Below, piece by piece: positions 296 to 14,612 of a stretch of DNA of 64,000 nt. Under the pieces are notes generated by a model. The model worked only from the letters and a program-made list of their open reading frames with translations, searched no databases and had not been told where the DNA came from. Each line of letters starts with the position of its first letter. The first letter of the stretch is position 1. The stretch lies in contig NC_135763.1 of NCBI RefSeq assembly GCF_052425735.1, forward strand, positions 1,426,001 through 1,490,000, read 5' to 3'. The translations under genes were made by a program, and so were the position numbers. Origin of the DNA: Oculina patagonica (lineage: Eukaryota).

Positions 296-855
296 GAGAA
301 GGTTACAGTATTTTTAACCAAAACGTCCACTTTTAAATTTTAGTCAGTGACAACAATTTTTCACTATTTTTTAATCATGCCTGACTATGATTACGGTATT
401 TCCAAAGAGTAATTTTTTGGGTAAACCAGGCAGAAATGCTAGGGGGTTGCTCGGCTTGGATAGAGGACCCGCATTATGTTGCTTCCACCTTAAATATAAC
501 AGCAGAGATTTAGAAAACGATTTTATAATGAAATTAAACGCTAAAATATTGTTAAAATTCATTTTAAAACTTTAAAAACTTTAAAAAAGTAGACGACGTT
601 TCGGCGCTACTCTACGCCATAATCAAGTCAAAAGAAGTGATAGTTAAAATAAGAATATATATAACGTGAAACAATGAAAATAGTTGTGTGTCCTATGGGC
701 ATAATACGTAAAGTAAAACAATGGAAAAACTAAAGGTTCTAATTAAAAATAGGGAAGTGTCAAGTAAATAATTTGGCGCGGATAGAGTCACTCTGGGTGT
801 TCAGGGAAGGATTAATGTCCCTGATGAACAGCATTTCGTATACGAGGCAGTCAAA

Positions 856-1137
856 CTTTTTTTTTTTTCATGTTTAAATGCGCTTTTATTACAAACAACA
901 CTCACAAGCTATTTACATGGTACTAGAAACAATACAATACATACTTATCTAAATTACAGCACACTACATATTTAACACTACATTACAATAAGTTAAACAA
1001 TACATTAATTACAGTCGCTGGTACGTTACATTTAAATGTATAAAGTAAGTGCATTGCTTACATTACTAAAATACACACTCTAACTAGCTGAGAAGGAATT
1101 TCCATTTCTGTTTAAATTTCTTCTCATCATTTGACAG
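856..1137 (-). mobile_element. 3' tail of an L1/Tx1-like LINE with poly(A)
   Basis: Poly-T at about 857-868 (poly-A on minus), AATAAA just upstream on minus, and an ORF end LSNDEKKFKQKWKFLLS* with the F..KW terminus common in Tx1/L1 ORF2. Confidence 0.5.
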
Positions 1138-1906
1138 CTGTTTCAATTCAACGGTGAGCTGTATGAGCAAACAGACGGTGTAGCTATGGGCTCGCCACTT
1201 GGCCCACTACTAGCCAATGTTCTCATGTGCCATATAGAGAACCAACTGGAACAAAACAACATGATCCCGTCATTCTATCGAAGATACGTTGATGACACTC
1301 TGGTCAAAATGCCCAACACAGACGCGGCTATAGATTTCTTACAAGTACTTAACGGTGCCCATCCTAGTTTGTCTTTTACCATGGCACTTGAACATGAGGT
1401 CTCTATTCCATTTCTCGGCACACTAATCACGAGAAACGACAACACACTAAAAACGGAAGTCTACAGAAAACCAACTGACACGGGCCTTCTGAAAAGGCCT
1501 GGTAAACACAATGGTTAATCGGGCGCACCGTTTATCCTCCACCGAAGAAGCCTTCACGAAAGAGTGCAACAAGTTACGCACCATGTTTTCAAAACTACAC
1601 TACCCGAACGCATTAGTCGATTCTACAATACGCAAGTTCAGGCAAGAAACTAATATAGAACCGCACGCCGCAACCCCATCAGAGCCATCTGTCTACATTT
1701 CATTGCCTTTTAAAGATCAACGATCGGCTAATCGCGTCCGCAAAGAAATTCATTCTCTGGGATCCAAGATCAACATCGATGTCAAACCCGTCTTTACCAG
1801 CAGAAAACTGTCACGGATTTTGTGCGTAAAGGAAAACAAGCCCCCGATCGTAAACACACAATGCGTTGTTTACTTGTTTAAATGTGATTTGTGCGATGCA
1901 AATTAT

Positions 1907-2187
1907 GTAATGTTTAATAAATGAGCAGCAGTGTTTTATCAAGTTTAAAACACGAGGCGCAGCCGAGTGTTTTAGACTTGACAAAGCACGAACTGCGAAT
2001 TTATTGAACGGCTTAAAAATCTTCTGATGTAGATCAACTAATTCTTGCACTTATATTTAGATTTGGGGTTATTTTCGCCTAGAAAATTGGACGTTAAGTT
2101 TAGCCGTGTCTTTATCAGATATAAAGAAACTCATTAAACATTCATTTCTTTTGTATTTTCTTTATGAATTATTAATGAGTTTTTTAA
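1907..2187. mobile_element. Non-coding insertion splitting the PLE GIY-YIG motif
   Basis: Sits between TAT and GTC of ...NY|VGFT...; has an internal hairpin centred on GGCGCAGCC (about 1956-1964). Confidence 0.7.
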
Positions 2188-3057
2188 GTCGGGTTTACTG
2201 CCCGACACCTACATCAACGCATTAGGGAGCACCGTTATTCTGCGATCGGTAAACACCTTGAGGCACAACATGGCAGCAAAGGAGCAAAGATTAATCTCCT
2301 TTTCAGAGTTAAAGAAATGCAGAAGCAAGTTTGACTGCCTCGTATACGAAATGCTGTTCATCAGGGACATTAATCCTTCCCTGAACACCCAGAGTGACTC
2401 TATCCGCGCCAAATTATTTACTTGACACTTCCCTATTTTTAATTAGAACTTTTAGTTTTTCCATTGTTTTACTTTACGTATTATGCCCATAGGACACACA
2501 ACTATTTTTATTGTTTCACGTTATATATATTCTTATTTTAACTATCACTTCTTTTGATTTGACAATGGCGTAGAGTAGCGCCGAAACGTCGTCTACTTTT
2601 TTTAAAGTTTTTAAAGTTTTAAAATGAATTTTTACAACATTTTAGCGTTTAATTTCGTTATAAAACCTTAAATATAGCAATTTATTTTTTATTTATTTTC
2701 ACATGTGATGGTCGAGCTAGTTTCAATACATACATATTATACTCGCTTCTCGTTATTTGGAATTGAAATTGGAATGTGTTTTTACCTTTATAGGAACACA
2801 CATATAAGCAATACTACTGGTAACTGTAAAACCTTTATGTTGTTAAAATTTGCTATTTATCATTATTTTCAGGTGGAATTTTTATAGGTGGTCTTCTCGT
2901 CCGTCGTTTCAAATTAAAAGAATCTCTCCTAATGGCAGCCAAATACTGTCTTATTATTAAGGCTCTCACTGCACTTGGCAGCATTTTGTGGATTTTTCCA
3001 GGATGCAAAGAAGTGCAACTTGCAGGAATTATCAAACCTTACTGGGACAGGTATGTA

Positions 3058-3876
3058 AAGGCCCAGTAATACGGGCTTCTCTTTCAACTTGTCTCGCAAC
3101 ATTGTTACATTGCAAGTTGTAAAGTGTTGTTGCGCGTATTACCTCCCGTATTGCAAGTTGTAAAGTGTAGTTGCGCGTATTATCACCCGTATGCAAGTTG
3201 TAAAGTGTTGTTGCGCGTATTACCTCCCGTATTGCAAGTTGTAAAGTGTTGTTGCGCGTATTACCTCCCGTATTGCAAGTTGTAAAGTGTTGTTGCGCGT
3301 ATTACCTCTTTCAACTTGTCTCGCAACATTGTTACATTGCAAGTTGTAAAGTGTTGTTGCGCGTATTACCTCCCGTATTGCAAGTTGTAAAGTGTAGTTG
3401 CGCGTATTATCACCCGTATGCAAGTTGTAAAGTGTTGTTGCGCGTATTACCTCCCGTATTGCAAGTTGTAAAGTGTTGTTGCGCGTATTACCTCCCGTAT
3501 TGCAAGTTGTAAAGTGTTGATGCGCGTATTACCTCCCGTATTGCAAGTTGTAAAGTGTTGTTGCGCGTATTACCTCCCGTATTGCAAGTTGTAAAGTGTT
3601 GTTGGGCGTATTACCTCCCGTATTGCAAGTTGTAAAGTGTTGTTGCGCGTATTACCTCCCGTATTGCAAGTTGTAAAGTGTTGTTGCGCGTATTACCTCC
3701 CGTATTGCAAGTTGCGGCAGCACGTTGCGCAAAGTAGACAAAACTTCAACTTTTTGCAACATTTTGCCGCAACTTGCCATAGGGTTGATAATATGCGCAA
3801 TAACAACGCTTTACAACTTGCAATGCAACAATCTTGCGAGACAAGTTGAAAGAGAAGCCCGTATTACTAAGCCTTA
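3058..3876. mobile_element. MITE with about 70-bp TIRs containing an expanded 41-bp minisatellite
   Basis: Left AAGGCCCAGTAATACGGGCTTCTCTTTCAACTTGTCTCGCAA versus right TTGCGAGACAAGTTGAAAGAGAAGCCCGTATTACTAAGCCTTA. Unit TTGCAAGTTGTAAAGTGTTGTTGCGCGTATTACCTCCCGTA repeated about 14 times (3110-3714). Confidence 0.85.
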
Positions 3877-6800
3877 ATACCGGACAAAAAACGAATATAG
3901 CTTGAATTTAAATTCAGACCTATGCACCTGACCTTGGTCACCACCTCCTGAAAGTTTGCTGGGTTCTAAGATTAAGAAAATTTATGATTTGATTTTTCAC
4001 TTGGTTCTTCACAGCCCGACGAAGGACAGTTCATTATTCTCAACACTGCCTCGTCCCCAGGCGTCCTCGTCCTTGGTCGTGCACGGTTCGCTTGGTGTTG
4101 TGGGACTGACGTGCACGGTTCGCTTGGCGTTCTGGGCCTGATGCGGACGGGGAAGCGGACGCCTGGCAGATCCTGTTCAGTTTCTTGGCAAAAATGTTCG
4201 GTTTCTCGTCAAAAGGCGTTTTAGCGCTTTTAACAAGTTTAACGGTCAAGAAATCAACACTGGGAGCTACGTGGAAGTTAGTACTGTCAACATGGGGATT
4301 TTGACGGCCTTTCGGATCGTTTTCGTTGCTCTATCGAGCCGATTCTTTTCAGCGTTCACTGAGGCTGGTTTCAGCAAAGCGGGGGTCCCCTTGCTTTAAT
4401 CTAATGTTGGCGGGAAATCTAGCTCAAAATCAGCGATTTATCCGGAGAAATGGTATGAAATCTGAGCAGAAGATTGAACAGAGAAAATCCCACTTTGATT
4501 GCGAGAAGATCGTCAATGGCGGAGGGTAAAGAATCTCTGCCGTCGTTAGAAAATTAAATTTCTTTATAAGCTTCGAACTGAGGGTAAGTTTCGCTTCAAT
4601 CGATGCCAGAGCTGGTTTGTTTCGTTTCTGAGCAGTGCTTAGCTTCCTTACATTTCGGTATACTTTTATTTGTACCTCTTGCAGCTATAAAGTCTATAAG
4701 CAGCGCTCCAGAGAGAGCCGTTCAAGTGCTAACAAGTGTTTTATCAAATTAATGTTGTCCAACGTAGGAGATCTTATGAGAACATAACACATAAACAATT
4801 ATAATGTGTGCTGATATTTTATTCTAGCTAGGTTAACCTCATAATTTACCTTTCTTGACAGAAAGTACAATTATTGAAATTTCAACTTTACGTAGTTCTG
4901 TTTATTTCAGCACTTAATGTGTTAGTGACCAGAGGAGGCAGATCCTACTCAAAATTTCTTTTTACTGATTCAAGTGTTAATATCGAAATTACTCTCCGCT
5001 GATTAATTTGTGTGTTTCTCGTCACTGTACTGCTTGATAATGCATTGATACTGTAAGGAGAAATAAGGTTTTGGTCACTCTTTTGGAGGATTTAAGCAGG
5101 ATAAGACTGACAAACTTGTAACAAAAAAAAATATAGTTTTTTCTAGTTGTAGTGTCACAGGGAGTGTTTTTTAGTAGGTGTTTGTAGAGAATGTGTGGCA
5201 AAACTTTATTCCTAAGGGTAACAAAACACTGGACTATGACAGACAGCAAAACTTAAATTATTTTTGCCGGCCCAAGAGTTTAATTTATGGCTGAGATAGT
5301 GTAGGAAAATAAATTGAGATGCCAGGCAATTTTACATCGAAGGGTTTGTTACTGACTCTTAAATGCATTTCATGTGAACATGGCAACTCCTGGCTAACCA
5401 TATTCAATTTGATTAAAATAAATAAACCGGCAAACCTGGAGTTGCCACTTTTTCCCCAGTCTGCTAATAGCCCACTGCCTCTAGCAGTCTTGGAAAACAA
5501 TTAAAACACTTTAAATGTTGAATGTATGCTTTGCCTACCCTGCTGCTTTATACCCATGACAACAGCTGTTGTAAGAGAAAAAGATACCTTTTTATATTTT
5601 TAAAAATATTTATAGTAGTACTGATTTTGCAAAACCATTCAGACATTTCCCTTCAATTTGCAAAAGTTATCTAGCCAGGAGGGTTTTACCTGCATGGCCT
5701 TAACCTACTGTGAATTTAAATAAGTTGTGCATGAGATAATCTGAGGATTACTGTTTGTACGACAATTTTCTTGGTGGTGCCCTTCATCTGATTATCATCT
5801 AGACATAATAGTTAGCCTTCTCCTGAAAATTAACTTGATTGATTTTCTAAAGTGATTTTCTACCCTCTTCAACCCTCCATGTACAGTTCACCCCAGCTCC
5901 TTTTGTAATTAGTTAATATCAAGTCAGTGGGAGCATAACAAAGGCCTTTAGACACGAAATTTGCAAGCACAAAGTAAACATTTCTTTTCAGTGGCTAAAA
6001 AAGTAAAGAATTTTACAAATACATGTACTAAGAATTACAGGAGAGTGATAAAAAATTAAGAGGGGTTTGTTACTAGAGTTATTTAGAATAGAATGATGGT
6101 GGGCCTTGGATGTCCAAAGATGCTAGCCTTGCATATCAATACATAAATATTTATGAGAAAAATTATCTTTCTATTTTTACAAAGCAAGATTTCAAGATGA
6201 TCTTAAATCATATACCGCACCGGGAACCATTCTAAAAACTTCATGAAAACAGTGTCATTCATCAGAAATGCTCTCTGCACCTGCCCCCAAATTAAAAGCC
6301 TGCATGGCATGGCATAGGGTACATTCCAAACAATTTAGTTGCCTCAGTTGCATTCACAGCATAAATGGCAGACTCACTGCCACAATGCTTAACAAAAAAA
6401 AGTGTGTATTTATCCTTAATAAATTGTGGTTTAATGGGAAAAAACTTTAAATATTCATTATTCCCCGCCCATTTTTCACAAGTATTCATTATTCCTTGCC
6501 TATTTTGAGATCAATATTCATTATTCCTTTAAATAGGTTGATGTTCCCAGGTATACAATTTTCAGACCCACAAAACGAGAGCGGTCAAATATTCTATTCC
6601 AATTCACAAGTTGTGCACAGGACACTGGACATTGTTCTGCTGCTATCCTTCTGGAAGGTGTTAGTTCATCACTTATTACATGCTTTTTTAATGGTGCCCT
6701 CTAGTTACACCTTCAATGGCCTTGATTAAAAAGTGTAAGAAGCATGTGGCTTCTTAGACTTGCCCCAAGTCGCTCGTTTTTTCTTTGCATCTATAGTTAC

Positions 6801-6981
6801 TTAAATAAAATGACCACTTGAGTAAAATCACCTTTGTAATCGCGCGGGATTTATTTCTGTGAACGCGCGCGCGACACTTACCGAGGAATGGCTCGGAACG
6901 AGCGACTTGTGTCACTTGCAGGAAATCGATTCTGGCTGACGTTTATTGCCGCGAAAAATTGCATCATGCTTGTGTGCACTG

Positions 6982-8278
6982 AATAGCGTCGCGCACAAAT
7001 TCTAAAAATAGATTTGGTCTCATGAGACCCCCCGCGTGACTCAGACAAACATTGCAGTCGGCCATAAGCGAATGTATGCGAGAGAGCGTCAATACGTGAA
7101 GAAAACATGTGAAAAGTTAGGTAAATCGGAGTGTATGCTTTCTCAAAGGGTCAAGAATGGTTAGTACAAAGCACTGCTGGCATAGTGAGTGCAAAACCGA
7201 CTCAAAGTATCCTGAACATTGGCCAAAATCGCTCTTAGAGCTGGAGGAATCGGGGAAGAAAGTCTTCATTCCATTCGGCTTACGGTACGAATTGCGAAAC
7301 GAAACGGTACTTTACGAAATGGTACTTTGCGAAACGGTACTGAGGTAAAAATATTGCAAAAATATTGAATGGGGCAAATAAACATTGATTGCAAAACAGG
7401 TATAAGTCATGATAAGTCGACCCAGGTTTGCGTGAAGGATAAATGTGATGCCTGCTTGAATCGAAACTTGTCGCGTCGCGAAAGAATTTATTTTCGAACA
7501 TGAATCAAAAATGCAAAACGTGAATCAGGGTGAATGAAAGTAACATCAAAAATCAGAAATAAAGACGCCTGTAAAAGCACTACTCTCGCTTTAGTCATCC
7601 GAAAATGAAGGAAGCGAAATCTTTCTGCCGCCGAGGATTTCTTATCTTTATTATAGTGCGTGAATGTACGCCGCCCGGCCCGCCAGGTTGTAAATAAAGG
7701 TCGCGTTAGTCACGTTTGTCATTCTTTCTTGTTATGTGTAGTCATGAAAACGAATGGATTAAAAGTCTGTTTTTTAACATGGCGAACGTTTATTAAGATC
7801 GAATAAAATTTTCAAAGAAGGTTCATGAATTTGTGGCATTTTTTTGCGGGGAATGTGTTATCTTTCGGGCGACAAACGCCGACAACTGTGATTATGCAAA
7901 TAACTGCTATACCGTTCAGCTACATTTTTGCCGATAAAAATTATTTCGAGCCGATCAAAATAGCTATTTTCGGTCAATTCTAAATTTGACGCTAGGTTCG
8001 TGATTAGTGTTTAGAAATACGATTTTTTCGAAGGGTTGTCGTTTTCCGCTTAATTTTAGCCCTCTGCACTTCAGCCATCGTTTTAACTGATCCGCAGTAT
8101 AGTTCTCTGCTTCACTTTCAAATTTCGAGCCAGGAACGCCATCATCTTGCGTGAGAACGGCCAAAGACCGAAGCGAAGTGCTCGCGAGCGACATAATTTC
8201 TTCATATCGCTCTTGTAGTTTGTCTGAGTCAAGTGGGGGGTCTCAATTTTGGTGACGTCATTTGTGCGCGACGCTATT
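6982..8278. mobile_element. Internally deleted ISL2EU/Harbinger-like transposon nested in the large element
   Basis: TIR AATAGCGTCGCGCACAAAT plus subterminal GAGACCCCC...TGACTCAGACAAAC at both ends. Convergent ORF starts: THAP-like MVSTKHCWHSECKTDSKY...FIPF (7157, +) and SAP domain YTADQLKRWLKCRGLKLSGKR (8194, -). Confidence 0.7.
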
Positions 8279-8896
8279 GGTTTCTTTTATCGTATTGACG
8301 TCAGTTTCGTGCGCCGTGTGCAGCTGACGCGCGCTGTGGCGTGTGTTAAAATTGCGATTTTCTTCCCTTTTCGTGGGAAATCATACTTAGGGCCCTTGAT
8401 GGCTCTCTCATTTCTGTAAGATTTAAAAGGGACATGCATAAAAAAAAGACATTTGTGTTGTTTGTTCTAAAACTGGTTTAACTGCCGATGTGAGAAGGAA
8501 ACAAGTCTACCAAAGAGCTGAAAAGTTAAACGCAAGCTTGTCTCGCGAGCAGCGCGCGCTAAGTTGGCGGGCACAGCGCGCTCAGTAAGTTCGCGCGCAA
8601 TACAATATGATTGACATAATCTCGATGGCGTCACCGGTGGAAAAATCCACCGGTGACGCCATATTTCAGAATTGGCACGCTGCAGGTGAGCCAAGTCGCT
8701 CGTTCCGCAACGATCCTCCGCCATTTTGTTTCTCGTGCCTGCGCGCGCCCTCCGTTTCCGTATCCAGCGGTCTCCTGCGAATCTAACGAGCGACTTGAAA
8801 CAAGTCTAGTGGCTTCTTTATTTGCTGACTAGCAAAATAGTACCCCCCCCCCCCAAAAAAAGCCAAGCGACATGTTTCAGTGAAAAGCTTTATTAA

Positions 8897-9667
8897 GGAC
8901 GGTGCCTCCTATTGTTACTGCGCACCTGTTCTGCGCATCACGCAATGCATCGATCACACCGGGCGCGCGCGCTTTTGATGAATTTGCTCGACCAAGCGCG
9001 CGACTAAAAAGCAAGAAAGATTTCTTTGCGACGAAATCTAGTTTATGGACATATACTAAGGCAGGAACAGCGGAAACAGCAGAAGAACAACATATCAGTA
9101 ACCATTGACCTCTTACACTGAAAATGGCTCACATTGACAGATAAAAACAAATCGCTAAGCGCTAAAACGTAAACTGCTAACTACATATGGCGTAGTGCAC
9201 GCGCGAGATGCAAATTTTTAACTCGCTAGGGAGGGGATAGGAAAAATGTAACAGACCCCAAAAGCGATTTCACAGAGCTTGAAAACAACTCGTATAACTT
9301 TTAAAAACGCGTGGTGACCCCTACTTTTTATTTTATAAAATGGAAGTGGCAAGCCTAAAGAGCACATGTTTTATTTGTCATTGAGTGAAAAAAAGTTTAG
9401 GCCGATTTCGTGGCCGTGCAAGTGAGAGCTGTTAGAGTCAAAAATAGCTCAAACGCAATTATTTTGTTAATAGAAACGTGGATCACGCAGTTCCGAAGAC
9501 ATTATTTGTTAGTTATTTTAAAGATTTTTATATTTTATGTTGATTTTGTTCATGTACAAACAATTTCACATGGAATTTGCAAGGAAATGTTATTTAGTTT
9601 TACCTTTTTTTTTAAATGCCACGTCAGCACTTTTTTCCAGTTTTCAAACCAAATTATATCGAAAATT

Positions 9668-9700
<33 letters not shown>

Positions 9701-9775
9701 TAATAGCCCTTGGTAACATCTACATTTCTAGTCATCGGCCGGACAAAAATACCTTGTTATTAGTAGGCACCGTCC
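8897..9775. mobile_element. Non-autonomous TTAA-targeting TIR element (Kolobok-like)
   Basis: TTAA|GGACGGTGCCT ... AGGCACCGTCC|TTAA. Confidence 0.8.
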
Positions 9776-10309
9776 TTAAACAAACAATGACGACAATGCG
9801 GTCCAACCAATGAGTCTATATAATCTGGAAAACAATGAAGTGTTGCACGATGTTTATAACAAGTTCTTTTGTAGGCCATTGTACAAACTTGTTCGAAAAC
9901 GCGTTTATCTCCTTAACATCATCACTCGTGCAATCAAGTCGAAATTAGTGCACCTAACAGAAATACATAATATCACACCCGCTTTAAGCGAAGCATAGTC
10001 TTTTGAAGCATGTACAAAGACAACAACTGTACGTAACCATAACGACTTGTCTATCAAGAGTTACTTCTAAACCAATAAGTGAACAACGGATAAAAGATAA
10101 ATGTAGTGTTTGCCTTCAGGAATAACAGGAACGGTACAAGTGCCCACAAGTACGTCAACGGGCCACATAATTTAAAAGTAGCATTCTGTTACCAATCTGA
10201 GTATTATTCCTATATCATGACACATTTTACATTGAGCACCGCTTTATGAGTTATCTATTTTCAGCTGTAGCTGTTAGATCAGCTTTGTGATTTTTCAAAA
10301 AAGTTCGAC

Positions 10310-11995
10310 ATCACCGTAATCTAATACGGGTTGCTGTTCTCCCTGTTCGTGTACGACAAGAAACCCTGGATGGTCCTCCCGGCTGTTCGTCGTCTGAGGC
10401 ATCTGAAGCCTCATCCTCGGAGTCAATGTCACTGTCTACGCCTCCTTTGAGTATCCGCTCAATTCTTAAAACTTCTTGCTGCAAAATTGTGTACAGTTTT
10501 TCATTTGGCAGACCCTCATTGACTACTTAACAACTTCGACGCGGTCAATAACTGAATACGGCGAATTTCGACAATCTGAATATGACTCTTTAAAGGTGTA
10601 TTTGTCTCCCGTTTCACAGTTGTCGAGCCATGTTATGCTCATACAGTCGTCAACGAAATCTATTCCGTCATTGCTCCCTTTCTTGATCAGCAAATCTTTC
10701 ATAAGAACGGCAAGGAAAAATCACCATTCCTCTTTTTTTCTACCGTGTTTCACTGCAATGGTCTCATTTTGCTTGAACAAGATGTCGCACTGAATAACTC
10801 GATTATCCTGGGAATAGCTTGACGAATTAGCATGACCTGCGGCCAAGTCTTCTGTGAGGACATCACAACTCGAATCTTGGCGCTGCTGTAAAGAGAATGA
10901 AATAGGATAAGGTAGCTGACCGTTTTCTTCTTTACTCTTGTATCTTACGGTATGCTGGCAAACGCTTCGTCCAAATGAAATGGCAAATTCACGTAAAGTT
11001 TTCTTCTTTTCAAGAGATAAATTTTGCAGATCACTTTGTACTGCATCGACAATTGCCTGTGGAATGGGCGGAGGATTGTTAAGCACTTTGTTAGGATAAT
11101 AACTGTTAGGACCAGTGAAATATTGAAAATCACCACTGTGCATTCTCTTTTCCAGCTTTCTTATACAGGCGGCACGCCGGATTCCGTATTTGAGCTGCGT
11201 TGGCATCGAGTCCTGTTGCCGCATTAAGGAGAAAAAATTCCCAACGATTAAAGTGGTAGGTGCGGAAAACAGAATCTGGTTGACGAGGTCTTCTTCCCCT
11301 AATTCTGTAAGAAGATTTTTTAATTTCCCAAGGCTGCTATGAATCAGTTGAAATGACCTTCTTGTACAATGAGGTATTATTTGGTCGGGACCTTGAGTAG
11401 CTGTACGGCCCGTTCGCTCACGTGTTTCCTCTCCCCAGGTCAAAAGAAAAGCAACAACATTGTCAATGATCGATATTCCTTGATCAAAGGAAAATCTTGG
11501 TGGGCCACGGTAGTGATCAAGGTTAAATAGTTCAGCATACTTATAAAAGACATCTGACAGCTTCTTGAAAGGTTTCCCGTTCGTTATCATCCGAATGGCC
11601 TTATTTCCACTGTCGCAAACGAAAAGTGTCCTTCCAAACGTTTCCAAGCCATGAGGTGAGTGTAACGTTGCTGAGCTCACTACTCCATCCATGTCTCCAG
11701 TTTCATTCGAACTACCGGTCACTAGTTGGTATCTCGGGACATGCTCAATGTCAGATTCTTTTACAATCGTATGATTGCTAGAGTTTGATACGTAAAGGCA
11801 ACAATATAGGAAGCAAAGTCCAGAAGGAGAGACGATTAATTCAGAAGCAACAGAAGACAGTAACGTTCCATTCCTCGAGTCAATAACGAGAATATTCGGA
11901 TTACTTGTCAAGTTACTTGCAACATACAACTTATTTTCCTGGAAGGCTAATGCTACAGGCAGAATGTTGGTAGGCGTGTCCTTAGGTGGGTACAC
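10310..11995 (-). pseudogene. Decayed NHL-repeat (beta-propeller) protein with transposase-like C-terminal region
   Basis: 424-aa ORF with NHL-type repeats (SPSGLCF...LYVSNSSNHTI; GDMDG...ATLHSPHGL...LFVCDSGNKAIR). The frame continues through TGA at 10721 (EEW*FFLAVLMKDLLIKK...) and, with more lesions, to an acidic tail and RTRTGR near 10310. The N-terminus appears deleted. Confidence 0.7.
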
Positions 11996-14612
11996 AAGAT
12001 GCAGTCAATTTACGGGAAAATATAGACAACTGGATGGAAAATTAAAAACGTAACTAAACGCTTTCTAGCCAAGCTACATCTTTCAAACTTGGTGAATAAA
12101 AACTTTTGCCTAGCATTTTAACTTTACAATTCATAATTTGTCCAGAATTCAATTTTTGAAAAAAAATATTGCCGTCGGATTTCCATACACACACTATAAT
12201 TTCTCACTGCGTTGCCTACCTGCAAGATGGCGTGAAAAACCGTGATAAGGCCAATTAAAACATTTTTTTCGTGGTGTTCTGTTTTCCAACGTGGAATCTG
12301 TGAGCTTCAATGTGAGCTAACAAACGGATAAAAATGTTTAGATTCGTTAGTTAGCAGAGTTGAAGGGCCAAAAGTTTTCAAGTTCGATTCAAGTCTACTT
12401 TGAGATCGACTTTGAGGCTTGTGAACTATCATTGTTCATTCAATTCGGAAAAATAGTATGTTATCCTTTTCACCTTTCACTGTGACTTCTTGTCTGTAGC
12501 GTTATTTGGTTTCGCTGGCAGACTGAAGTCAACATGAGTTTCGGATGAGTTTATTAGCGGTCAAATGGCGAAGATGCATGGATCTACTTGGATTTTAAAC
12601 ACTACACTTAGAAATCGATTAGAAAAGAACTCTCGATTTTTATTGTTGTTGTCGTCGTTGTTGTAAGCTTATGGTTTGGAAATCTGTTCGAGTTAAAAAT
12701 AGTTTAAAAGCTTTACTTACCTGTCTTTCCTGTGCTTTCCCATCTTTACAAATCCGAACAGTTCTTAGACCGTAACCAAAGCGTCGAAATTTAAAGCGGT
12801 CAACTGAAGCATGTGCTTTGAAAGTGACGTCACAAAAATAATATCTCCCTTGGGGAGTAGTCCGCCTGGCAAATTTTGCAAGCTTAACATGAGGCAGATC
12901 TAGAGCGCCTGCCAAATATCTAAAATATAGAACACCTGCGATTATTATTTGGAGACAGAGAGGGTGAGGAGAACTTATTTTCTCTTTGCAAGTATTCAAT
13001 ATTCTTGATTAAAAAACTGAGTATTCAATATTCCTTACAATTTTGAGCCAATATTCAATATTCCTTTACAATTTCAAGCCAGTATTCAATATTCATTATT
13101 CCGCTTCAACCCCCGAACCTACTGGCAATCAATACAAAAATTGCATTAAAAAAAATTACAGTTATGATATCAAACATTTTTAGTGTAATTTTTATTTTCA
13201 ATTAATACAACAACTATCAAAGGTTGTGCTTGATTTCTGATAAGCAGATAATTAACATTTTATTGAAGTAAACCAGAGATAGTAGAAATGACATCCCAAA
13301 GACAGATGAATTGTTATTTGTATCGATGGATTCATACTGTTGTTGCATTATCTTTGTCGCGTCTGGCTTAAATGAGCGTCCATGGAATAACTAAAAGGCA
13401 ACTAACTCTCGGGCTCTACGAAAAAAATTCTACACAAAACAATTATGGAAAGGATAACTAATTTTCTTGTCATTTACACTCGGATTTACAAGACAACTTC
13501 GATAAACGGAAATGAGTACCTGTCTCTCTTGGAGTTCGGAAAATGTCATTAGACATTTCAACGTCTCTTTGCCGTAAAGGATTTAAAGCTTTTTAACTTC
13601 ACAGAGAGTGCCTCGTATGCTCCTGGCTCTTTTCAAGCTGAGCTGGGACATGAAGCGTGCGAAAATGGTGGTGAAGTCCGTCGTCTTATTAATAAGAATA
13701 TTTTTCATAAAAGATGTGTCCAAGGCGCTCTGTGCTGTAAAAATGCTAAATAGACGGCTCTTTTGCTGTTTTTAATACACTTTTCAGGGTTGATGACATT
13801 TTGGTCTGCCATATTGAATGCAAGATCTGCCAGGCGCTCCGCGGCTCGCTCCCTAACCATCAATCCCCGCGCTCCCTGTTTTCCCGCCTTACCGCCTCAA
13901 CGTCCGGCCAATCGGCGCCTGGGGACGAGGCAGATTCTCAACATGCAACAGGAACTGCAGTTGCCCGCTGTCCCAGATCAGACCTGTTTGTGGTGCGGAC
14001 AAGTTAACATATTTTTCGCCTTGTTTTGCCGGTTGTACGTCATCAGCCGCAAAAGGGGTAAAATAAAACGCACAGTGCTCAATTACTATTATTAATACTA
14101 ACACTTATCTAAATTCTACACAAATTTGTTATGAAAGGTTTAGGCTGTTCCTGGCATTCGGTTAGTTGAACCCGAAAAGAACGCCGTTTTTTTGCGCTGC
14201 TCCTCAACTGCAAAAAGAAAGCGTACTGGCACGTTTAAAAGGTTTAAGGTGGTCAACATGCAAAGTGAAACGTTTGCAGAATGTAAAGCTTAACAGTCTC
14301 AAAAAAGGCTAAGTATTTATGAGGAAATCTAGCTTTAACTCATCAAATGTCTTTTCTATGGCAGGTTTTCTCCAAATGCAGTTGTTTAACAGCAGATTTC
14401 TTCAATGTCTCAGGCCCTGAGACTGTTCGTGGATTTTGTGACCGTGGCTTCAGTTGTGATAACTACATTATATTTCTGGTTATTTTAGTGTCGATTCTCT
14501 TCATTAATTTTTTCCTCGCCGTTCCTCAGAAGACTGTGATATTAAGGTGAGAGAGATGTATAGAAATATTGAAATATAAGTACAAGATACTTAAAGTAAG
14601 ATTAACTACTCA

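Follow-up and report, generated by a model that had tools for sequence, protein, structure and literature searches.

What gene left behind, in the genome of a stony coral, a reading frame in which NHL repeats precede a transposase-like glutamate motif? The question arises from a 64,000-nucleotide stretch of Oculina patagonica DNA (NCBI RefSeq assembly GCF_052425735.1, contig NC_135763.1, positions 1,426,001 to 1,490,000 of the forward strand), called here the window at its full length, whose minus strand carries such an open reading frame (ORF). The initial annotation, made from the letters alone, had read this ORF either as a DDE (Asp-Asp-Glu) transposase into which a beta-propeller had been inserted ahead of the final catalytic residue or as captured cargo. 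Our analysis indicates that the feature is very probably the C-terminal part of a cut-and-paste transposase gene related to that of the P element, lying in a copy that is dead, internally deleted and non-autonomous. Beyond the window, the data point, with what we regard as an even chance of being right, to a deep and undescribed P-like branch whose known hosts are cnidarians and at least one priapulid. In this branch, a fused six-bladed NHL propeller bearing a SAP motif would have taken the place of most of the guanosine triphosphate (GTP)-binding domain, and a zinc module would have been gained. A propeller would then be known for the first time within the catalytic domain of a DDE transposase, matching on a single chain the arrangement of RAG1-RAG2, and the family may be active and GTP-independent. 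Intact, near-identical and possibly transcribed copies persist in the stony coral.

The window is about 40% GC and harbors many short, broken ORFs, as is typical for an animal genome. Read on the minus strand, positions 10310 to 12004 encode NHL blades, a helical segment, the motif TTLIVGNFFSLMR, the sequence FQYFTGPNSYYP, a stop and, beyond a further homologous piece and a frameshift, an acidic tail that closes with TRTGRTATRIRLR (the TRTGR end). The 424-residue ORF at 10721-11995 was present as first described, and the NHL repeats, the helical segment, the motif, YFT..YYP, the stops and the acidic TRTGR tail were all where the initial annotation had placed them. Taken alone, this ORF matched the Pfam NHL family weakly (E = 0.003). 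Fifteen database proteins, some of them from the stony corals O. patagonica and Stylophora pistillata, matched it at E values of 1e-32 to 1e-135, thus indicating that the pattern in the window is not due to chance. At the motif site, the longer homologs read VENFFSLMR, VENMFSLMR or VENLFSLMR. The motif occupies window positions 11257-11219 and its Gly codon, GGG, positions 11242-11240; the suggestion that this codon is one change away from GAG proved right, since the intact paralog L053 has GAG (Glu) there and reads VENFFSLMR, so that the window copy carries the substitution E880G.

A genome search with a homolog gave 58 matches; open frames of 1,194 and 1,189 residues were among them. The L001 locus (319-3882, minus strand) encodes 1,187 residues, although the true start is likely Met10, giving 1,178 residues as in a 99%-identical database protein; at the DNA level, the intact paralogs and the window copy are 98% identical. 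A paralog of 1,173 residues (L004) is 55% identical, and six more lineages of the same genome, with open frames of 1,098 to 1,244 residues, are only 22 to 24% identical. The intact element encodes a single intronless protein of about 1,180 residues.

This protein starts with a helical, DNA-binding-like region (residues 1-135), followed by an RNase H-like core with D157 on strand beta1, D321 after beta4 and a DxxH motif (D347/H350) after beta5. A module of ten cysteines (256-310), which we describe as a zinc module, lies between D157 and D321. The insertion domain comes next and is composed of helices resembling those of the P GTP-binding domain (362-430), an NHL propeller (426-767) and a second set of helices (769-875); it is followed by the helix of E880, with the motif VENFFSLMR, and by a C-terminal region with an acidic tract and, at its very end, a basic tip. 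Among eight aligned paralogs (22 to 55% identity), the invariant residues included D157 (SDAMAIKPG), the ten cysteines, D321 and E323 (SDCES or TDCEE), P346, D347, H350 and K353 (PDxxHxxK), and E880. A representative search yielded about 50 family members, from which 37 N-terminal domains and 32 C-terminal parts were taken, while roughly half of its listing consisted of giant NHL-repeat proteins; in this search, crowded as it was, no bridging relatives were seen. The full-length members, among which are those of a priapulid and a sea anemone, are 20 to 25% identical. Across this sample, D321, H350 and E880 were invariant, and D157 and D347 were kept in more than 90% of the sequences.

The full-length model (predicted local distance difference test [pLDDT] score 81, predicted template modeling score 0.77) showed strands at 427-767, long helices at 769-875, a helix at 877-887 bearing E880, a helix at 895-913, further helices and, at its end, a disordered acidic tail. 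Residues 1028-1130 of the L001 protein, corresponding to window positions of about 10490-10798, formed a beta-rich C-terminal domain, modeled with fair confidence and seen only in the L001, L004 and L032 groups.

The case for a transposase rests on residue conservation, on predicted structure and on profile comparison. The model of the N-terminal domain (residues 1-445), built on the 37-sequence alignment, reached a pLDDT of 88.9 and displayed the RNase H order, with D157 on the first long strand, D321 ending strand 310-320, and D347 and H350 past strand 343-346. When Foldseek was run against the PDB with this domain, the top matches were the strand-transfer complexes of the Drosophila P element transposase (6p5a, E = 2.2e-7; 6pe2, E = 3.7e-7; probability 1.0), other DDE enzymes having E values of 0.025 or worse, with Hermes next at 0.025. 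By VIA-align, the P transposase scored Z 11.4 over 291 residues (model 1-432 against chain 120-430), followed by retroviral integrase cores at 6.8 and by Transib, RAG1 and Hermes at 5 to 6 (Hermes 5.1). The ESM Atlas structural search returned THAP9/P clusters with PF21787, PF21788 and PF21789 (template modeling score by target up to 0.77), and among the named clusters of the Atlas feature search, which relies on a language model, only PF21787-bearing ones appeared.

Profile comparison also led to P. With hhalign, the 8-sequence family alignment found nothing in four truncated coral P ORFs and the 37-sequence alignment gave a weak E value of 8.6e-4; only the comparison with 12 full-length canonical P/THAP9 proteins from cnidarians and echinoderms was convincing, with a probability of 90% and an E value of 1.6e-6 over 223 columns. 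In this alignment, D157 fell on the Asp of FDEMK, D321 on the Asp of TSDGAS and PDxxH on SDxPH, the Cys module standing out as an insertion. Of the 37 members, 9 matched PF21787 at E values up to 1 (4.5e-5 at best), and PF21787 was the only Pfam family to recur. Searches of the PDB by sequence or profile with the whole protein, the family, the N domain or the C part never found the P transposase and returned only NHL domains or, for the C part, spurious designed-repeat proteins. In predicted structure and profile alignment, the family shows a P-like fold with the first two catalytic residues in register.

We then considered what lies between this core and the invariant glutamate. Residues 426-767 of the model superposed on the NHL domain of TRIM71/Lin41 with a Z score of 27.9 over 265 residues (root mean square deviation [rmsd] 2.5), and the values for TRIM71, Thin and Pizza6 were Z 27 to 28 (Pizza6, 27) and rmsd 2.0 to 2.9. 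The family profile matched the SOQ1 NHL domain in the PDB at E = 1.8e-28. A structure search with the full-length model was dominated by propellers and was uninformative on the catalytic core. The model shows a complete six-bladed NHL propeller between DxxH and the invariant Glu, that is, between strand beta5 and the E880 helix, where P has its GTP-binding domain; G722, G732 and D756 of the propeller show little or no variation among family members. Since the start of the P/THAP9 GTP-binding domain is matched in structure by residues 362-430, the propeller seems to have been inserted into an older helical insertion domain rather than simply to have replaced it. In most lineages a SAP motif is looped out of the propeller (P0084, 564-598, and P0057, 561-594, with Pfam E values of 1e-11 and 8e-10, respectively; weak in L033), its place being taken in the window's lineage by an acidic, disordered loop predicted with low confidence (536-565). 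In this protein, a P-like core is combined with an insertion domain of new architecture.

Glutamate was found at position 880 in 32 of 32 family sequences, and the full-length model places it in helix 877-887, directly past the insertion domain. From this invariance, from its position and order in the chain and from the predicted helix, we infer that E880 completes the metal site and is catalytic. The initial proposal of a DDE transposase with a propeller before its last catalytic residue is thus supported by the family: the Glu throughout, the Asp pair on a P-like RNase H fold and, in every member, the propeller between them.

The full element was delimited by comparing 10-kb stretches around the copies. 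In L053 it spans positions 2386-8362 (5,977 bp), begins and ends with TC..GA, and is bounded by terminal inverted repeats of 20 nt that are 100% complementary (TCGGGGGTTGAAGCGGAATA). Inside each end lie three 17-nt subterminal repeats (TCAATATTCATTATTCC) with a spacing of about 31 bp (L053, 2415-2494 and 8264-8348); they point in one direction at both ends, are not inverted, and are candidate transposase binding sites. Upstream of the ORF, L053 7125-7381 forms an internal inverted repeat of 114 nt (88% complementary, 29-nt loop). TCATCAA is found on either side of the L053 copy, a 7-bp target duplication, and the L055 copy, also complete, has the 8-bp duplication CCACTTTT at its sides. L054 represents a paralogous empty site, in which the repeat surrounding L053 is uninterrupted (GATC-TCATCTA-GTGTT). 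The 5' end of the element occurs in at least 34 genome copies at 90 to 100% identity. For the distant member L059, the inverted repeats were not resolved, as small palindromic repeats interfere.

Within the window, positions 6444-13116 aligned by blastn with the full-length element at 97 to 98% identity, in four blocks (L053 2411-2720 to window 6444-6755, 2711-2796 to 8809-8896, 2793-5019 to 9776-12006, and 7255-8362 to 12004-13116). The features of this copy, all on the minus strand, are as follows.

6444-13116, minus strand: whole copy of the NHL-propeller P-like transposon, internally deleted and non-autonomous, with two later insertions and the 3' repeat missing (blastn)
13097-13116, minus strand: terminal inverted repeat of 20 nt, intact, at the element end that is 5' with respect to the ORF, an exact family match; the plus strand reads ...TATTCCGCTTCAACCCCCGA
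12007-13096, minus strand: 5' noncoding region, containing the subterminal repeats of 17 nt and the region of one arm of the internal 114-nt inverted repeat (aligns with L053 7255-8342)
12004-12006, minus strand: junction of the 2.2-kb internal deletion (alignment to L053)
11578-12004, minus strand: remnant of the NHL propeller, last blades, about residues 625-767 of 1187 (Pfam NHL, family profile and model)
11255-11577, minus strand: helical segment after the propeller, about residues 769-875, second alpha-helical part of the insertion domain (helices 769-784, 798-823 and 837-859 of the full-length model)
11219-11257, minus strand: TTLIVGNFFSLMR, helix of the presumed third catalytic residue, mutated E880G (comparison with the intact copy)
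10721-10723, minus strand: nonsense mutation, Gly1053 GGA to TGA, which ends the 424-residue ORF (comparison with the intact copy)
10527-10531, minus strand: 5-bp insertion causing a frameshift near residue 1116 (comparison with the intact copy)
10311-10484, minus strand: acidic C-terminal tail and conserved basic end TRTGRTATRIRLR, out of frame (aligns with the C terminus of intact proteins and the family consensus)
9776-10310, minus strand: 3' noncoding region, first piece (aligns with L053 2793-3328)
8809-8896, minus strand: 3' noncoding region, second piece, between two nested insertions (aligns with L053 2711-2796)
6444-6755, minus strand: 3' subterminal region that stops 25 nt short of the element end, so that the inverted repeat is lost (aligns with L053 2411-2720)

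The window copy differs from L053 in four ways, namely, an internal deletion, two insertions and the loss of the 3' inverted repeat, its left end showing no match to the family inverted repeat. The deletion of 2.2 kb (L053 5020-7254) removed the 5' leader and codons 1 to 624, and with them both catalytic Asp residues, the zinc module and the first propeller blades, leaving the C-terminal 563 codons of the transposase gene. Over the 1,691 coding nucleotides that remain, 31 mismatches, among them E880G and a single nonsense change (Gly1053), and a single frameshifting insertion separate the remnant from the intact copy; because of this insertion, the acidic TRTGR tail is read in another frame. 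Lacking D157 and D321, and carrying E880G, the stop and the frameshift, the window copy is unable to make transposase, and one of its inverted repeats is also gone.

The same deletion breakpoints were found in L057, and protein matches begin at the identical residue at five loci. In addition, VGNFF is common to all readable copies of the window's deletion subfamily (four loci), while full-length copies retain VENFF. The shared breakpoints and the shared VGNFF indicate that the window copy is a member of a non-autonomous lineage mobilized by the full-length element, and the Gly at position 880 is inherited from the founder of this lineage. The recurrent 2.2-kb deletion terminates within the loop of the 114-nt inverted repeat. 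A second non-autonomous subfamily, with its breakpoint immediately before LIVENFF and the Glu kept, was observed at several loci (L015, L016 and L019 to L023).

To which element the ORF belongs had been left open. An outer element with perfect 18-nt inverted repeats (CTGCCTCGTCCCCAGGCG, at 4046-4063 and 13916-13933) and a 10-bp duplication (ATTCTCAACA; the ends span 4036-4063 and 13916-13943) surrounds the NHL-element copy, which is nested within it (4046-13933) but has its own ends; the ORF is thus part of its own nested element (approximately 6444-13116) and not of the outer one. Two further elements interrupt the 3' region of the copy. One, of 2,054 bp (6755-8808), has 24-nt inverted repeats that are 88% complementary, and its host overlap of 10 bp (L053 2711-2720) suggests a 10-bp duplication. 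The other is an 879-bp inverted-repeat element (8897-9775; 8893-9779 with flanks) that is flanked by TTAA and has termini GG..CC, a Kolobok-type signature (RR..YY, TTAA); it is probably a miniature inverted-repeat transposable element inserted at a TTAA of the NHL element.

Family members were found in Oculina, Stylophora, Exaiptasia and Priapulus caudatus, all annotated as uncharacterized. One O. patagonica gene model, ACROYT_G030391 (P0013), fuses a transposase fragment 94% identical to the window to a piece of reverse transcriptase and looks like an annotation chimera. Canonical elements of the P/THAP9 type, with PF21787 and PF21788 and, in full-length relatives, THAP, are present in the same genome in several near-identical copies (L043 to L049), so that the coral hosts both the classical and the propeller-bearing branches. 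As for transcription, the ORF was found in contigs of seven RNA libraries from several studies, and in four RNA runs contigs covered L053 2386-7118 at about 99% identity, breaking at the edge of the 114-nt inverted repeat (7118).

How does this element compare with known systems? The P element/THAP9 transposase (PDB 6P5A/6PE2), its best structural and profile match, has the same helical precatalytic region and RNase H core with D, D and DxxH, and likewise a large insertion domain between beta5 and the helix of the catalytic Glu, in the coral protein presumably E880. In P, the insertion domain lies between beta5 and alpha4, the catalytic triad is D230, D303 and E531, and the duplications are 8 bp (PMC7776569). 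The inverted and subterminal repeats are alike as well, the duplications being 7 or 8 bp in the coral element. In contrast to P, an NHL propeller, with SAP in many lineages, fills most of the coral insertion domain. The spacing between the two Asp residues is 164 residues in the coral protein, where the 10-Cys module is inserted, compared to 73 in P, and that between the second Asp and the Glu is 559 residues compared to 228; moreover, the coral protein is intronless, with about 1,180 residues. Hermes and other hAT enzymes resemble the coral family in their 8-bp duplications, C/DxxH, an insertion domain before the catalytic Glu and an ExxFS-type Glu motif, but Hermes is a far weaker structural match to the coral core than P is. 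The propellers of TRIM71/Lin41, Brat, NHLRC2 and SOQ1 have the same complete six-bladed NHL fold, but they are free-standing C-terminal or lumenal host domains that bind RNA or protein, and none lies within a nuclease fold.

RAG1 and Transib, of the RAG1-RAG2/ProtoRAG/Transib group, are among the structural matches of the coral core (Z of about 5 to 6). The RAG recombinase offers an analogy to the coral protein, as it is a DDE RNase H enzyme that works with a six-bladed propeller and has zinc-binding modules in or near its catalytic region. Its propeller, however, is of the kelch type and belongs to a separate protein, RAG2, while that of the coral is of the NHL type and fused inside the catalytic domain, and the target duplication of Transib and RAG is 5 bp, compared to the 7 or 8 bp of the coral element.

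The family could instead be a cut-and-paste transposon outside the P superfamily, either a superfamily of its own or a branch of Kolobok, hAT, MULE, KDZ or Zisupton sharing the RNase H and DxxH core, which we consider unlikely. The following points weigh against the P-related transposase that we prefer, and those on domains and on the shallow profile also speak for this alternative. The Pfam scan of the intact coral protein returned NHL only, with no transposase match, PF21787 included; the first shallow hhalign comparison was empty; THAP (PF05485), which canonical coral P proteins have, was not detected in 15 full-length members, nor was the GTP-binding domain PF21788 in any member scanned. 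The C part did not match canonical P significantly by hhalign (E = 0.29), nor did it with permissive settings, and the likeness of ENFF to the P/THAP9 motif (QDPLEEYFGxQR in canonical P), on which the initial annotation had drawn, thus has no statistical support. The proximity in space of E880 to D157 and D321 is presumed. Both ends were obtained for only two copies, whose duplications differ in length (7 and 8 bp). Finally, the RNA contigs extend beyond the end of the element, so that DNA carry-over or read-through is possible, and no transposition has been observed.

The top structural rows of the Atlas also include unnamed Basidiomycota clusters, and no Kolobok structure exists for comparison, which likewise leaves room for a transposon outside P. 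Yet Hermes, Transib and RAG1 scored far below the P transposase in either structure search, hhalign aligned the family to canonical P with both Asp residues and DxxH in register, and PF21787 was the sole recurrent Pfam family in the 37 members. Kolobok is defined by TTAA target duplications and RR..YY termini (PMC9587614); the duplications found here, TCATCAA and CCACTTTT, and the termini TC..GA fit neither feature. For hAT, Pfam scans of family members found no BED finger and no hAT dimerization domain, and the Z score of Hermes was 5.1 against 11.4 for P. For KDZ and Zisupton, neither a KDZ transposase nor a CxC domain was among the matches of the 37 members (E up to 1). A different explanation, that the propeller is host cargo acquired by exon capture in the coral lineage and has no role in transposition, draws on the fact that NHL propellers are common host domains whose closest solved relatives, SOQ1, NHLRC2 and TRIM71, are host proteins. 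We hold it to be very improbable: the propeller lies at the same site, between DxxH and the E helix, in one continuous ORF in all full-length members, including about 22%-identical relatives such as that of Priapulus; G722, G732 and D756 are near-invariant; and several divergent lineages in the coral genome retain intact ORFs of 1,098 to 1,244 residues. The cargo option of the initial annotation was dropped on this account. Equally hard to credit is a domesticated host gene family of which the window piece would be a pseudogene fragment. The NCBI models of Exaiptasia, Stylophora and Priapulus are indeed annotated as ordinary uncharacterized genes, and that of Priapulus has introns, but against it stand the inverted repeats and target duplications, the empty site, copies that number in the dozens and are nearly identical, and deletion derivatives that have been amplified.

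If the family is a P-like transposase, a multimer would bind the inverted and subterminal repeats, D157, D321 and E880 would coordinate two metal ions, and the element would be excised and joined into the target with a stagger of 7 or 8 bp. The propeller and SAP lie where, in the P transposase, GTP is bound and contact is made with the transposon end and with target DNA, and most likely they would serve to keep DNA, or a host factor, in place at the active site.

Insertion domains set how DDE transposases handle DNA ends, with hairpins in hAT and RAG and GTP-guided positioning in P. Those of characterized DNA transposases are structurally alike (PMC7776569). Full-text literature searches for an NHL or other propeller in connection with transposases, P, Kolobok or insertion domains (Repbase not covered) found no description of the family and no report of a beta-propeller at the insertion-domain site of a DDE transposase. 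For annotation, the family is currently filed as uncharacterized or NHL-repeat host genes and yields chimeric models such as P0013. If true, a P-like enzyme with a propeller, SAP and a zinc module in its insertion domain would be a new solution to the handling of DNA ends, and the family could show how accessory propellers such as RAG2 were recruited. An intact, recently amplified element of corals and sea anemones could, moreover, become a tool for cnidarian transgenesis.

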